A stretch of DNA of 5,926 nt from contig RQSC01001174.1 in the NCBI GenBank assembly GCA_013416795.1, positions 1-5,926 of the forward strand, in the 5' to 3' direction. Position numbers and translations under genes: made by a program. Every line of letters starts with the position of its first letter. The stretch's first letter is position 1. Shown here one piece after another: positions 1,912 through 5,926 of the stretch. Below the pieces are notes generated by a model. It saw only the letters and a program-made list of their open reading frames with translations, was not told the DNA's origin and did not search any database. The stretch comes from Prasinococcaceae sp. CCMP 1430 (lineage: Eukaryota > Plantae > Prasinodermophyta).

Positions 1912-1912
1912 G

Positions 1913-2422
1913 GCGCCGGCGTCGGAGGACCCCGTGCGCACCAAGATGATCCCTCGCCTCATCCCCGAGCAGGCCTGGTACATGCACCCGGCGCTCTCCG
2001 TCCTGATCGGCGGCGTGCTGCCCTTCGGCGCCGTCTTCATCGAGCTCTTCTTCATCCTCACGTCGATCTGGCTCCACCAGTTCTTCTACGCGTTCGGCTT
2101 CGTCCTCCTGGTGGGCATCATCCTCGCCATCACGTGCGCGGAGATCTCGGTGGTGCTGTGCTACTTCCAGCTGTGCGCGGAGGACTACAACTGGTGGTGG
2201 AGGAGCTTCTTCACGAGCGGCTCCTCGGCGCTCTACCTGTTCCTGTACTCCATCTTCTACTACTACACCAAGCTGGACATCTCGAAGACGCCCAGCGGCA
2301 TCCTGTACTTCGGCTACATGGGCGTGGTGAGCATCCTGTTCTTCGTGGTGACGGGCACCATCGGCTTCTACGCGTGCTACGCCTTCGTGCGCCGCATCTA
2401 CGGCGCCCTCAAGATCGACTAG
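1913..2422 (+). CDS. TM9SF4: Transmembrane 9 superfamily protein (nonaspanin/EMP70/TMN, TM9SF2/4 group), 3' part only
   Basis: The frame extends upstream of the GTG at 1934 (APASEDPVRTKMIPRLIPEQAWYMHP). It contains the family motifs GGVLPFGAVFIELFFILTSIW, YFQLCAEDYNWWWRSF and GTIGFYA, and ends in the C-terminal KID* (KxD/E COPI/Golgi-retention motif). Codon usage is strongly GC3. The luminal domain and first TM helices are missing. Confidence 0.96.
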   Translation, partial: APASEDPVRTKMIPRLIPEQAWYMHPALSVLIGGVLPFGAVFIELFFILTSIWLHQFFYAFGFVLLVGIILAITCAEISVVLCYFQLCAEDYNWWWRSFFTSGSSALYLFLYSIFYYYTKLDISKTPSGILYFGYMGVVSILFFVVTGTIGFYACYAFVRRIYGALKID

Positions 2423-2468
2423 CGAGGCGCTCCAGCGAGCGAGGCCGCCGCCCGGCAGCTCGCGCCAT

Positions 2469-2473
2469 TGTAA
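2469..2473 (+). terminator. TGTAA green-algal polyadenylation signal of the TM9SF gene
   Basis: TGTAA lies about 47 nt after the TAG at 2420-2422. UGUAA is the established near-upstream poly(A) element of chlorophytes. Confidence 0.6.
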
Positions 2474-2654
2474 TCAGCCCCCCGACGGCACGGACCTCGA
2501 CCGATGGCGCGCGCGCGCGTCGCTCGCGAGCGCGCCCCCGCCTTCGCCGCGGGCGCGGCGGGCGAGGAGCGCGCGCCACTTGCTCGTGGGGTGTTTTAGC
2601 AAAAATGTGTCTTTCCTCCTAAGTTTACTGGTACACGCCCGCGCCGCCGGCCCG

Positions 2655-4364
2655 TCAGAACGCCACGATGTCGCCGGTCTTGTCGGCCTGCGCGCTGCCG
2701 AAGGCGTCGTCGAAGGCGCTGAAGGCGTCGGACGCCGCCGCCTGCTGCTGCGCGCCCCCGCCCGCAGGCGCGGGCGGAGGCGGGGCGTCGATGGCGCCGA
2801 AGGCGTCGTCGTCGAGGGGCGCGCCCGGGTCGCCGAACGACGAGGAGACTGCCAGCGGCCTGCCAGCGCCGAAGGACGCGGGGCCGGACGACGTGGGGGG
2901 CGCATCGGCGGAGGAGGCGTTCGAGGGCGGCGGCTGCTCGCCGCCGTCTCCCGAGGAGGCGCCCGAGCTCCACGGCGCCCCCGCGCTCGTCGGCGGCGCG
3001 GCGCCGAGCCTCCCGAACGAATCGCCCAACGACAGGGACGCGAAGGCGTCGACGTCGACGCCATGTGGGGGGGAGGGGTTGGGGGGCGCGGCACCCAGCT
3101 CGGCGCCGGCAGCCGGGGGCGCCGCCGCGGGGGGCCGGGCGCCCGCGCTTGGTGCCGCGCCGGCCCCCGCTGCCGAGAGCTTCAGCGAGAAGGCCGGGCT
3201 GTCGAACAGGGGGTGCTGCGGGCGCGGCACCTGGGCGAGCCTGCCCAGGCCGAGCATGTTGTGCAGCTCGTCCAGCTGGGCGGCGAGCGCCCGGATGCGC
3301 GCGCCGACCGCCTCGGCGCCCCCTCCTCCGTTCGCGGCGGCGGCTGCGCCCTTGGCGTCCGCCCTGAGCGCCTCGAGCTCCCTCTCCGCCGCCGCGACGC
3401 CGGCGTCTCCCGCGGCGACGGCGGCCGCCGAGGAAGGGGGAGGCGCGTCGTTTTGGGGGGCGAGGTCGGTCGTCGGGGCGTCGGTGAAGGCGTCGGCGGG
3501 CGCCGGCGGGCGCGCCTGCCGCTCTTGCTCTTGCTCTTGCTCTTGCTCTTGCTGCTGCTGCTTTGGCGCCTCGCCGCCTCCGAAGTCCGCCCCGAACGTC
3601 GCCGGGGGTGGGCTGGAAGAGGGGGCGCCGAAGCCGACGCCGTCGCCCGAGAGTGTCGTCGTCGTCTCTTTTCTGGAGTGCGGGTCGAACGCGGCGTCGC
3701 GGGCCGCCTCCTGGCCGAACGCGAAGCCCCCCGAAGGTCGCGGCGGCCGCGGGGCCGCACCCCCCTGCGGCGCCCCGGCGGCCGCGGCGGCGGCGGCGCC
3801 GGGCTCCGCGAGCGACGCGGGCAGCGACGCGGGGAGCTCGCGGCCTCGCTTGGCGCCCTCGAGCAAGCACAGAGCGACGCACACCCCGTGCTCGTCGAGG
3901 TATCCGTCCGCATCGCCGTCGGCGAGGTCCCAGACCTGGCGGTTGACGGTCTGCGGGAGGCCCCAGCGGGTCATGATCGGCACCATCTCCGCGCCGCTCA
4001 CCCTCCCGTCGCCGTCGTCGTCGAGGCTGGCGAAGAGCGCGGAGTACTGCTCCATCTGCTCCGCGCGCAGCGCCCATTCGGTCTCGGAGCGCAGCGGCGG
4101 CACCTCCACGCCCTCGAGCGTCGGCGCGGGGGCCTCCACCGACTCCGCAATGACGGGGCGGGCCATCGGCGCGGTGAGCGCCACCCCCTTCAGGCTCTGC
4201 GCCAGCCCGATCAGCCGCAGCGCGGCGTAGAACTGCCGGGGCGTGAGGAAGCCCACCTCGTCCTCGTCCGCGAACGTCCACACCGACGCGAGCGCCTGCT
4301 GGGACAGGCCGCTGCGGCGCAGGAACGCCACCGCCTCGCCGCCGCTCACCCTGCCGTCGCCATC
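2655..4364 (-). CDS. EH-domain endocytic adaptor (AtEH/Pan1-, Eps15/Ede1-like), exon 2; full CDS complement(join(2655..4364,4556..4606)), 586 aa
   Basis: The exon starts after a ...CCGTAG acceptor with DGDGRVSGGEAVAFLRRSGLSQQALASVWTFAD...FYAALRLIGLAQ (EH1). EH2 follows: YSALFASLDDDGDGRVSGAEMVPIMTRWGLPQTVNRQVWDLADGDADGYL...CVALCLLE...GRELPASLP. Then a short coiled coil and a disordered tail with DAF/FxDxF motifs; TGA at 2655-2657. Both domains resemble the EH domains of Arabidopsis AtEH1/AtEH2 as I recall them. Confidence 0.9.
   Translation of the reverse strand, partial: DGDGRVSGGEAVAFLRRSGLSQQALASVWTFADEDEVGFLTPRQFYAALRLIGLAQSLKGVALTAPMARPVIAESVEAPAPTLEGVEVPPLRSETEWALRAEQMEQYSALFASLDDDGDGRVSGAEMVPIMTRWGLPQTVNRQVWDLADGDADGYLDEHGVCVALCLLEGAKRGRELPASLPASLAEPGAAAAAAAGAPQGGAAPRPPRPSGGFAFGQEAARDAAFDPHSRKETTTTLSGDGVGFGAPSSSPPPATFGADFGGGEAPKQQQQEQEQEQEQERQARPPAPADAFTDAPTTDLAPQNDAPPPSSAAAVAAGDAGVAAAERELEALRADAKGAAAAANGGGGAEAVGARIRALAAQLDELHNMLGLGRLAQVPRPQHPLFDSPAFSLKLSAAGAGAAPSAGARPPAAAPPAAGAELGAAPPNPSPPHGVDVDAFASLSLGDSFGRLGAAPPTSAGAPWSSGASSGDGGEQPPPSNASSADAPPTSSGPASFGAGRPLAVSSSFGDPGAPLDDDAFGAIDAPPPPAPAGGGAQQQAAASDAFSAFDDAFGSAQADKTGDIVAF
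3521..3560 (-). repeat. (GCTCTT)5 plus (GCT)n coding microsatellite encoding QQQQEQEQEQEQE
   Basis: Five exact GCTCTT units at 3521-3550 followed by GCT units, in frame in the EH gene. Confidence 0.9.
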
Positions 4365-4555
4365 CTACGGCAGATCGGAGGCGGTGCGTGCGTTGTTGTT
4401 GTTGGTTGTTGTTGTTGTTGGGGGAGGGGGGGTCAGCGCGGCGGCAAAAGAGGAGCGGCCGCGCGCGGCGCTGCCGCACACCCGCCGCACGATGCGAGAG
4501 GGGAGCGAAAAAGGCGGGGGGGGGGTGGGGGGGGCGCGCCCGCGCGCGCGCGCAC
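4365..4555 (-). other. 191-nt phase-0 GT-AG spliceosomal intron of the EH gene
   Basis: Donor GCG|GTGCGC at 4555, branch-like GCTGAC at 4437-4432, acceptor CCGTAG| at 4365, and no AG between branch and acceptor. Removal fuses FRLADA to DGDGRVSG and restores the EF-hand loop; if retained, exon 2 is preceded by an in-frame TAG. Confidence 0.9.
4392..4420. repeat. (GTT)n / (CAA)n microsatellite inside the EH intron
   Basis: gttgttgttgttggttgttgttgttgttg read directly, with one interruption. Confidence 0.9.
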
Positions 4556-4606: not shown

Positions 4607-5017
4607 CGCCCTTGACGCCGCAACCCCCGCGCGCGCCCCCGCGCCCGCGCGCGCAAAGGCGCGCAGCGCAACACCCGCAGGGGGGCGGCACGCGCGCCCG
4701 CGCGCAGTCTGGCGCCCGCCGCGCGAAGAGCAAAGTTGCCCCTGCTGCAGCTGGGTGTGGCTGCACTGCCCCCTATCGGACTCTCGGTGAACCCTGTTCG
4801 TCCGCCGGTCATATCCGGGAGATGCGCGGACAGACCCGGGTATGCGCGCGGTGCGAGCCCTCCGAAGCTTGGCGTGATGACCGTGCCGCCCGCCGCGGAT
4901 TGACTTACGGTAGAATGGAGGGTTCGGCGGAAAGATTCCATGCATTTTGACGTAATGAGTGGGTATGAACATATGCTCAAGAGTTTCGCAACCGTAACCC
5001 TACGGCACTCGTTCGAA

Positions 5018-5029
5018 TAGTCTAGTCGG
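5018..5029 (+). promoter_or_regulatory. Pol III internal A-box
   Basis: TAGTCTAGTCGG matches TRGYNNANNNGG and lies wholly in exon 1. Confidence 0.8.
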
Positions 5030-5033
5030 TTAT

Positions 5034-5071
5034 TCGGTTGCCTCCTGCTAAACGGGGGGAACTGCGGCCAC
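5034..5071 (+). other. Non-canonical tRNA intron at position 22/23 with a BHB-like splice motif
   Basis: TCGGTTGCCTCCTGCTAAACGGGGGGAACTGCGGCCAC folds into a hairpin (CGGTT 5035-5039 / AACTG 5060-5064; CCTCCTG 5041-5047 / CGGGGGG 5053-5059). A 4-bp helix GGTT 5028-5031 / GGCC 5066-5069 lies exactly 2 nt 5' of each inferred cut. Confidence 0.82.
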
Positions 5072-5081
5072 GACGTCAGTT

Positions 5082-5086
5082 TTACA
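5082..5086 (-). terminator. Candidate TGTAA poly(A) signal of CWC27, overlapping the tRNA anticodon loop
   Basis: TTACA on + (TGTAA on -) about 74 nt past the CWC27 stop. It is the only such pentamer between the CWC27 stop and the EH start codon. Confidence 0.45.
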
Positions 5087-5101
5087 CACTGAAGGCCCCG
5101 G

Positions 5102-5110
5102 GATCGAGAC
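5102..5110 (+). promoter_or_regulatory. Pol III internal B-box (A54 variant)
   Basis: GATCGAGAC matches GWTCRANNC. Confidence 0.75.
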
Positions 5111-5122
5111 CCGGTTCGAACA

Positions 5123-5137
5123 TTTTCATTTTTTTTT
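5123..5137 (+). terminator. RNA polymerase III oligo-T terminator
   Basis: T4 (5123-5126) directly after the discriminator, then T9 (5129-5137). Confidence 0.85.
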
Positions 5138-5159: not shown

Positions 5160-5926
5160 TTAGCTCGCGCCGCCGCCGTGACCGCCGCCGCCCCTCCCCC
5201 ATCCTCCGCCCCCCTTGCGCCGCTGCTTGTCCATGAACTTCTGCTTGCCCTTCTCAACGAGCGGGTCCACCACCACGTAGTCGTCCGCGCTCTCGTGGCG
5301 TGCCATCGCGTCCAGCGGATTGGGGCCGGATTCGACCTCCAGCCTGTGGCTGCGCCAGCCGTCGCCGTCGTCGCCGCCCCCGGCCCCCCCGCCGTTGCCG
5401 CCGCCGCCGCCGTCCGCCGCGCCGGCCATGGCCGCCCTGAAGCGCTGCATGCGCGCCAGCGTATCGCTCTCGTCGCCTCCGCGGCGCTTGGCGACGCCGC
5501 CCCTGCCCTTGAGCCCCTTGAGCGCTAGCTTCCCCCCGCGCACCTTGACTCCGCCGATGGTCGCCGGCAGCGGCGCGGCGCGCGCCGTCTGCCGCCGGAC
5601 TGCATCGGCTGCGGGCTGCTGGCTGGCCGCGGGCGCGGGCGCCTGCAGCTGCTGGTCGCGCTGCCTCCGCTCCCCGTGGTCCTCGCCTCCCGCACCAGCG
5701 GCCGCGGCTGCGGCCGCAGCCGCCAGCCTCTGCTTCTGTTCGAGCACTTTCTTCATCATGCGACGGTTGAAGGCGTCGTCATCGTCTTCGTCGTCGTCGT
5801 TGCCATCCCCCTTGCCATCCCCCTTGCCATCCCCCCCGCCATTCCCGCCGCCGGCGCGCCCGCCCGCCGCTGCCCCCGGCGGGCCCATCGACGCCCCATC
5901 AGCAGCGGCGCCCGCGCCCGTCGCCG
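5160..5926 (-). CDS. CWC27: CWC27/CYP57-type spliceosomal cyclophilin, C-terminal part (5' end, with the PPIase domain, outside the window)
   Basis: The frame is open from the window edge (5924) to TAA at 5160-5162. It carries the CWC27-like C-terminal motifs DDDDAFNRRMMKKVLEQKQRL, DTLARMQRFR, WRSHRL and DDYVVVDPLVEKGKQKF. The last matches the plant CYP57 tail DYVVHDPLLEKGKEKF, recalled from memory and not searched. Confidence 0.85.
   Translation of the reverse strand, partial: ATGAGAAADGASMGPPGAAAGGRAGGGNGGGDGKGDGKGDGNDDDEDDDDAFNRRMMKKVLEQKQRLAAAAAAAAAGAGGEDHGERRQRDQQLQAPAPAASQQPAADAVRRQTARAAPLPATIGGVKVRGGKLALKGLKGRGGVAKRRGGDESDTLARMQRFRAAMAGAADGGGGGNGGGAGGGDDGDGWRSHRLEVESGPNPLDAMARHESADDYVVVDPLVEKGKQKFMDKQRRKGGGGWGRGGGGHGGGAS
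5800..5835 (-). repeat. Three perfect 12-bp tandem repeats encoding (GDGK/N)3 in CWC27
   Basis: TTGCCATCCCCC at 5800-5811, 5812-5823 and 5824-5835. Confidence 0.9.

Follow-up and report, generated by a model that had tools for sequence, protein, structure and literature searches.

A candidate nuclear tRNA-Val(UAC) gene with a predicted ectopic D-stem intron in the green-lineage alga Prasinoderma coloniale

Disrupted tRNA genes in Archaea and algae

The canonical intron of eukaryotic tRNA genes lies between tRNA positions 37 and 38. Its central helix is formed by positions 32-35 and the cut falls after position 37 (PMC4090602). Ectopic tRNA introns with bulge-helix-bulge (BHB)-like motifs are established in Archaea, in Cyanidioschyzon merolae (PMC3728597), in Chondrus crispus (bioRxiv 10.1101/2021.12.21.473619) and in the Guillardia nucleomorph (PMC13578239; PMC4090602). 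The first-pass annotation of the locus described here had listed Cyanidioschyzon, some prasinophytes and a nucleomorph as the eukaryotic cases of ectopic or permuted tRNA introns. That background was slightly off, and Chondrus crispus has to be added to it (bioRxiv 10.1101/2021.12.21.473619).

Nuclear tRNA introns of C. merolae are found outside 37/38, including in the D stem and the D-loop, and range in size from 11 to 69 nt (PMC3728597). In this alga the definition of the motif called for 3-nt bulges, a central helix (H) of 4 bp and outer helices longer than two pairs. Strict and relaxed motifs (hBHBh', hBH and HBh') occur at the junctions, and splicing was demonstrated by RT-PCR and Northern blot (PMC3728597). 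The candidate gene described here is likewise a nuclear eukaryotic tRNA gene with an intron outside 37/38 and a relaxed motif. Unlike the genes of C. merolae, a red alga, it belongs to a green-lineage host (Prasinodermophyta), has a single intron and is unpermuted, and its splicing is predicted. The introns of Chondrus crispus are located at D-loop position 20/21 and T-loop position 58/59 and were confirmed by experiment (PlantRNA 2.0, bioRxiv 10.1101/2021.12.21.473619). Essential tRNA genes of Chondrus were labelled as pseudogenes by tRNAscan-SE and were rescued by manual inspection (bioRxiv 10.1101/2021.12.21.473619). A D-region intron is common to Chondrus and the present gene. The Chondrus introns always occupy the same two positions, whereas the site here is 22/23, inside the D stem.

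Archaeal non-canonical introns, as cited from Marck and Grosjean (2003) in PMC4090602, have a BHB motif or a relaxed HBh' or hBH form and are free in position, the D and T regions included. The relaxed forms are described there as accepted by broad-specificity endonucleases (PMC4090602). To the extent covered by that source, the likeness to the present locus is that the positions of the two cuts are dictated by a central helix of 4 bp, each cut lying 2 nt beyond the 3' end of one strand; the difference is that this is a eukaryotic nuclear gene with RNA polymerase III (Pol III) signals. In the green algae Ostreococcus and Micromonas, circularly permuted nuclear tRNA genes with BHB-like junctions were reported (Maruyama et al. 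2010, as cited in PMC3978253). As far as that citation describes them, they share with the present gene a disrupted nuclear tRNA gene, a green-lineage host and a BHB-like motif. Those genes are permuted, whereas the gene here is colinear with an ectopic intron.

A 2014 review described green algae as having almost no ectopic tRNA introns (PMC3978253). A 2026 review of photosynthetic organisms placed introns at non-canonical positions only in Cyanidioschyzon, Chondrus and the Guillardia nucleomorph and did not mention Prasinoderma (PMC13578239). In the literature searched there was no report of ectopic BHB-like tRNA introns in green plants; permuted genes were what was reported for green algae. 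The P. coloniale genome paper and its supplements contained nothing on nuclear tRNA genes (PMC7455551). The kind of gene is thus already known; what is new is the host lineage, Prasinodermophyta, the sister group of all other green plants.

The locus and the boundaries of the insert

The window, which is the whole stretch of DNA analysed, is 5,926 nt long. Its G+C content of about 70% fits the 69.8% of the published P. coloniale genome (PMC7455551). An ORF at 5160-5888 on the minus strand ends 38 nt from the tRNA gene and has 99% identity over 178 residues to PRCOL_00003377 of Prasinoderma coloniale (EukProt EP00793). PRCOL_00003377 is a CWC27-like protein of 481 residues with an N-terminal cyclophilin domain. 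A second minus-strand gene, at 2655-4349, encodes an EH-domain protein. By sequence the host is the eukaryotic alga Prasinoderma coloniale, and the CWC27-like cyclophilin and EH-domain neighbours, together with the G+C content, place the locus in the nuclear genome. The phylum to which Prasinoderma belongs branched off before Chlorophyta and Streptophyta.

The tRNA gene (5011-5122, plus strand) sits between the two minus-strand genes. It forms a local dip in G+C content (0.59), the surrounding DNA being about 60-80% G+C. The features of the gene and of the predicted precursor fold are listed in Table 1.

Table 1. Features of the candidate tRNA-Val(UAC) gene and of its predicted precursor fold, in window coordinates.
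Feature	Position	Strand	Description
Exon 1	5011-5033	+	23 nt: acceptor 5' strand, U8 A9, D-stem 5' strand, D-loop, U22
A-box region (tRNA positions 8-19)	5018-5029	+	Whole in exon 1 and left intact by the intron; read from the sequence
Helix H, 5' strand GGUU	5028-5031	+	G18 G19 U20 U20a of the D-loop; minimum-energy fold
Bulge AUU, 3 nt	5032-5034	+	Predicted 5' cut 5033/5034, after the second base; unpaired probability 0.83-0.98
Predicted ectopic intron	5034-5071	+	38 nt, between positions 22 and 23 (U22/G23), D-stem 3' strand
Intron hairpin	5035-5064	+	h' 5035-5039/5060-5064, continued by 5041-5047/5053-5059
Helix H, 3' strand GGCC	5066-5069	+	Minimum-energy fold; unpaired C 5065 just upstream
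A-C, 3' side of 5x2 internal loop	5070-5071	+	Predicted 3' cut after 5071; relaxed (loop) side of the motif
Exon 2	5072-5122	+	51 nt: D-stem 3' strand, anticodon arm, variable loop, T arm, acceptor 3' strand, discriminator A
Anticodon TAC	5083-5085	+	Inside exon 2
B-box region (positions 52-62)	5101-5111	+	A54 and A60 replace the usual U and pyrimidine
Pol III terminator-like run	5123-5137	+	T4 (5123-5126), CA, T9 (5129-5137), straight after the discriminator base

No tRNA was called by ARAGORN in the raw window and no match was found in it by Rfam at E up to 1, in line with the expectation of the first-pass annotation that standard finders would miss such a gene. That annotation had proposed a hidden tRNA-Val(UAC) with a 38-nt insert between U22 and G23 and had suggested deleting the insert in silico. 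Deletion of 5034-5071 produced a 74-nt tRNA-Val(tac) in ARAGORN, which recovered the predicted isoacceptor and confirmed the coordinates. The anticodon loop is uninterrupted, so the insert is not at the 37/38 location of the canonical eukaryotic tRNA intron; its position, 22/23, is an ectopic one. Exon 1 holds a perfect 7-nt complement of 5115-5121. The A-box region has all six of U8, G10, A14, G15, G18 and G19. The start of the insert, TCGGTT (5034-5039), repeats the D-loop bases just upstream (5026-5031). The T9 run is striking within DNA this rich in G+C.

In the spliced form the acceptor stem has 7/7 Watson-Crick pairs, the anticodon stem 5/5 pairs and the T stem 5/5 G-C pairs. The D stem has three pairs plus U13/U22, a layout common to intronless eukaryotic Val(UAC) genes. 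In all, 20/20 stem pairs are intact. Of the conserved or identity positions checked, 22/24 fit, including U8, A14, G18, G19, A21, U33, A35, C36, G53, U55, C56, A58, C61 and A73. The valine identity bases A35, C36 and A73 are all present. The two misfits, A54 and A60, lie in the T-loop, are unusual for an elongator tRNA and weaken the B-box match. The claim that the stems, A box, B box and terminator were all intact therefore held for the stems, the A box and the T runs, and failed in part for the B box, which is not fully consensus. The cloverleaf of the spliced RNA had an energy of -20.4 kcal/mol compared to a minimum of -21.9 kcal/mol. Folding energy was unexceptional for the spliced RNA (z = -1.4) and for the precursor (z = -1.6).

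Kinship with Val(UAC) genes was examined using a covariance model of 17 intronless Val(UAC) genes from metagenome contigs. The contigs had been fetched with the anticodon arm of this gene as the search pattern, so the contribution of the anticodon arm to the score is circular; the T arm and acceptor strand are the independent part of the match. The model matched 5055-5122 with 39.8 bits (E = 3.6e-12), the runner-up in the window having E = 0.28. It was unable to span the 38-nt insert and aligned exon 2 with a spurious 5' strand taken from the intron; the match therefore does not place the intron. A search with nhmmer matched 5073-5116 (E = 2e-9), which is in exon 2 only. The metagenome scan with the anticodon arm yielded 69 loci, all of them either intronless Val(UAC) genes of eukaryotes or bacteria, or decayed copies with low G+C content, with no relative of the alga among them. 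A metagenome scan for Val(UAC) with an insert of 20-50 nt after GGTTAT gave 0 matches.

The chance level of the deletion result was measured on six dinucleotide-shuffled windows, in which one free deletion of 10-60 nt was allowed before ARAGORN was run. At the default threshold each shuffled window gave 1-4 spurious loci. At the 105% threshold there was one match across the six shuffles, compared to 155 deletion variants at the real locus. At the 110% threshold there were zero matches in the six shuffles, compared to 43 deletion variants at the real locus. The appearance of a tRNA when a piece is deleted is thus a weak test on its own. In the real window two further clusters of such calls, at 3631-3704 and 4234-4275, were rejected as noise. 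Both were inside coding DNA and were gone at the 105% threshold.

The boundaries of the insert were located in three mutually independent ways. First, among 3570 trial deletions around the locus only 5034-5071 and 5033-5071 reached the top ARAGORN threshold, 113% of default. Second, the junction GGTTAT/GACG (splice site marked by a slash) lines up with GGTTAT-CACG, the sequence in eukaryotic Val(UAC) genes that have no intron. The D arm here reads GTCT-AGTCGGTTA-T/GAC-G, and the consensus of the intronless eukaryotic genes is GTGT-AGTGGTTA-TCAC-G. The 12:23 pair is swapped from G-C to C-G relative to those genes and pairing is kept. The spliced junction restores the D-arm architecture of eukaryotic Val(UAC) genes, including the U13/U22 mismatch. 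Third, the cuts that restore the cloverleaf, at 5033/5034 and 5071/5072, are each 2 nt 3' of one strand of a 4-bp helix, which is the spacing of the canonical motif (PMC4090602). ARAGORN score, alignment to intronless genes and helix geometry agree on the same boundaries. The boundaries are unambiguous because the product changes when both cuts are moved by one base.

Precursor fold and the splice motif

The unconstrained minimum-energy fold of the 112-nt precursor had an energy of -40.2 kcal/mol and kept the acceptor, anticodon and T arms. The first-pass annotation had described the insert as a hairpin and had placed a 4-bp GGUU/GGCC helix, with two G-U pairs, between the D-loop and the 3' end of the intron. 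Both elements appeared in the minimum-energy fold, in which helix H consists of two G-C and two G-U pairs. Pair probability was about 0.5 for helix H, 0.93-0.95 for h' and 0.54-0.61 for the distal helix of the intron. The exon sequence CGGUU (5027-5031) is duplicated at the start of the intron (5035-5039) and both copies can pair with AACUG (5060-5064). Helix H is weakened because this duplication permits competing pairing.

The predicted cuts come after A-U on the 5' side and after A-C on the 3' side, which bears out the earlier description of two cuts 2 nt 3' of the helix strands, each following an unpaired segment that begins with A. The 4-bp central helix of the strict hBHBh' motif is present in the fold. 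Two clean 3-nt bulges with outer helices were not found; C5065 lies opposite the 5' bulge, and the 3' site is in a 5x2 internal loop with no helix h in register. These departures are of the relaxed, BHL-like kind that had been noted from the sequence. The fold does contain the relaxed HBh'/BHL arrangement, in which H is followed by a single 3-nt bulge that h' adjoins, the second cut lies within a loop, and both cuts are 2 nt 3' of H. As predicted by folding, the motif is a relaxed HBh'/BHL motif and not a strict bulge-helix-bulge.

The geometry was compared to that of shuffled introns in 200,000 trials in which the cloverleaf dictated the cut sites. H arose in 6.7% of trials and H together with h' in 0.9%. 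In the real precursor 10/2952 pairs of cut sites had H and an outer helix, and the pair that restores the cloverleaf is one of the 10. On this modelling the motif geometry is unlikely to be accidental, at roughly the 1% level, a figure that is not overwhelming alone. Group I and II introns have a ribozyme core of hundreds of nucleotides which is recognisable in Rfam. The insert is not of this self-splicing type, being 38 nt long in a window where Rfam found no match at E up to 1.

Processing model and alternative readings

The best explanation of the locus is that it is a functional, spliced nuclear gene for cytosolic tRNA-Val(UAC) with a 38-nt D-stem intron at 22/23, and this is probably correct. 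The core of the first-pass reading, a BHB-like intron that splits the 3' strand of the D stem at an ectopic site, is supported by the deletion scan, the alignment to intronless genes and the predicted fold. We infer that the gene is transcribed, that its transcript is cleaved by the tRNA splicing endonuclease and ligated, and that the product functions in translation. Under the proposed mechanism transcription by RNA polymerase III would be driven by the A box (exon 1) and the B box (exon 2) and would stop at the T runs, giving a precursor in which about 112 nt are flanked by a leader and a trailer. The intron lengthens the spacing between the A box and the B box by 38 nt. Extra spacing of this size is within the tolerance of TFIIIC. 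In the precursor, G18 G19 U20 U20a would pair with GGCC, close to where the intron ends, and a hairpin would form from the remaining intron sequence, producing the relaxed HBh'/BHL motif. The tRNA splicing endonuclease, which would be a Sen2/Sen34-type complex, would recognise the motif whatever its location and cut at 5033/5034 and 5071/5072. The two exons would be joined by a tRNA ligase into the 74-nt tRNA, to which CCA would then be added.

The endonucleases of yeast and human act in a ruler mode, in which the cut sites are measured from the mature domain and Sen54 contacts the D arm (PMC4090602). This mode would be unable to work here because the D arm itself is split. Recognition would therefore have to depend on the motif, as was argued for Cyanidioschyzon (PMC3728597).

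The alternative that survives best, which is nonetheless improbable, is that a Val(UAC) gene once stood here, that it became a pseudogene when 38 nt were inserted into its D arm, and that it is now untranscribed or unprocessed. The departure of A54 and A60 from the elongator and B-box consensus is consistent with decay, and the repetition of 5026-5031 by TCGGTT at 5034-5039 is what a local duplication or slippage would leave. Helix H is populated only about 50% of the time, and no insert-bearing orthologue was among the matches of the metagenome scans. Against inactivation, all 20 stem pairs and 22 of the 24 conserved bases checked are intact, as is the terminator, and the insert fits a cut-site geometry that only 0.9% of shuffled inserts reach.

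A second alternative is that the insert is transcribed and handled in some other way, either removed by a different nuclease or kept as part of a tRNA-like RNA whose D arm is enlarged and whose role lies outside translation. This is very unlikely. A relaxed motif with its 3' site in a loop is consistent with such a route, and most ectopic introns of the Guillardia nucleomorph form no BHB motif, their route of removal being unknown (PMC3728597; PMC4090602). The cuts that restore the cloverleaf nevertheless match the 2-nt rule exactly on both strands of the 4-bp helix. G18 and G19 are needed for the contact between the D-loop and the T-loop of a normal tRNA. A retained 38-nt hairpin that ties up both bases would block this contact.

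The remaining alternative, a chance resemblance or a different gene, tRNA-Arg(CCU) with an 18-nt intron, draws on the report of Arg(cct) over the same 112 nt by the intron mode of ARAGORN and on the 1-4 spurious calls per shuffled window with one free deletion at the default threshold, but it is dismissed as extremely improbable, since exon 2 matches Val(UAC) with E = 3.6e-12, zero shuffled windows pass the 110% threshold, and the Arg(CCU) model, which the covariance match, the shuffles and the deletion scan all speak against, is structurally poor, in that its D stem is two pairs long, its anticodon stem contains a mismatch, its intron falls at 38/39 and its odd extra arm, about 25 nt long, turns out to be the anticodon arm of the Val model.

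If the tRNA-Val(UAC) gene is spliced as predicted, ectopic BHB-guided introns would extend from red algae and a red-derived nucleomorph to a lineage of green plants. The endonuclease of the alga should then act in an archaeal-like, motif-driven manner, and the alga would provide a tractable second eukaryotic lineage for the evolution of endonuclease specificity. Standard annotation would undercount its tRNA genes, and a needed isoacceptor could look missing because ARAGORN and Rfam miss this gene. A broader proposal is that P. coloniale keeps a largely fragmented set of nuclear tRNA genes and that its endonuclease finds BHB-like motifs anywhere, as in Crenarchaeota and Cyanidioschyzon; we regard the chances for and against this as evenly balanced. 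If true, it would be the first position-independent BHB-type tRNA splicing system in green plants. It would also suggest that position-independent recognition of tRNA introns dates back at least to the ancestor of Archaeplastida, with the restriction to 37/38 coming later, as opposed to being an invention of red algae.

Relatives of the window were sought through its protein-coding genes. A word-index search with the ORF at 5160-5888 gave no usable matches and an exact look-up of the EH-domain ORF of the window gave no match. In a more distant relative (Logan SRR30000419 and SRR30000420; 67% protein identity) no tRNA was found in the 530-930 nt upstream of its gene. Five TARA Oceans contigs were reached via the EH-domain protein. 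All five end in a tract of (GTT)n and a G-run at about 4400-4450, about 560 nt short of the tRNA gene. They are 97-99% identical to positions 1912-4448 of the window and, judged by this identity, place the alga or a close relative among the organisms sampled in ocean metagenomes.

T-loop and intron repeat of tRNA-Val(UAC)

The T-loop of the predicted tRNA-Val(UAC) is AUCGAGA and lies inside the B-box region. It carries A54 and A60, a pattern otherwise typical of eukaryotic initiator tRNAs and not of elongators. The B-box match is weaker due to these two bases, and the usual methylation of U54 would be ruled out as position 54 is an A. Two copies of TCGGTT separated by 2 nt span the start of the putative intron, so the D-loop bases just upstream recur at the intron 5' end. 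This duplication gives AACUG, the 3' strand of intron helix h' in the precursor fold, two alternative pairing partners. The repeat may be a vestige of the origin of the intron or else a processing switch.

Positions of features in the window
Feature	Position (nt)	Strand
CTAG-rich stretch	1640-1720	
Lone N	1911	
TM9SF/EMP70 C-terminal coding region	1913-2419	
EH-domain gene	2655-4349	-
(GTT)n microsatellite and G-run tract	4390-4450	
TCGGTT, first copy	5026-5031	
TCGGTT, second copy	5034-5039	
AACUG	5060-5064	
B-box region	5101-5111	
T-loop	5103-5109	
tRNA gene end to cyclophilin stop codon	5122-5160	

Neighboring genes and related contigs

A convergent gene for a CWC27-like cyclophilin, PRCOL_00003377, has its stop codon 38 nt from the end of the tRNA gene. 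The tRNA gene is probably antisense inside the 3' UTR of the cyclophilin gene, in which case a Pol III gene would be nested in a Pol II transcription unit. Every TARA Oceans contig obtained for the locus (L070, L073, L074, and L075) stops in one (GTT)n microsatellite and G-run tract immediately upstream of the EH-domain gene. A break in the assembly most likely accounts for this common end. Logan contigs L071 and L072 (SRR30000419 and SRR30000420) have a G+C content of 70% and encode an EH-domain protein with 67% identity to that of the window; their source is probably a more distant relative in the same algal group. No tRNA was found upstream of their EH-domain gene in the 530-930 nt of upstream sequence covered.

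TM9SF/EMP70 gene and CTAG-rich spacer

The window contains a lone N. The window also encodes the C-terminal 169 residues of a TM9SF/EMP70 protein with 100% identity to the TARA contig protein, while the N-terminal 346 residues are missing. In L073 the counterparts of window positions 492 and 1912 are separated by 1906 nt containing the remainder of the gene, compared to 1420 nt of unrelated sequence in the window. This discrepancy looks like a gap or misjoin in the reference assembly, or a genuine rearrangement. A weak match to the tRNA model, built from 17 intronless Val(UAC) genes, in the CTAG-rich stretch (E = 0.28) was judged meaningless. This stretch is of low complexity and partly palindromic (CTAGCTAGCTAG...), within a spacer richer in A+T.
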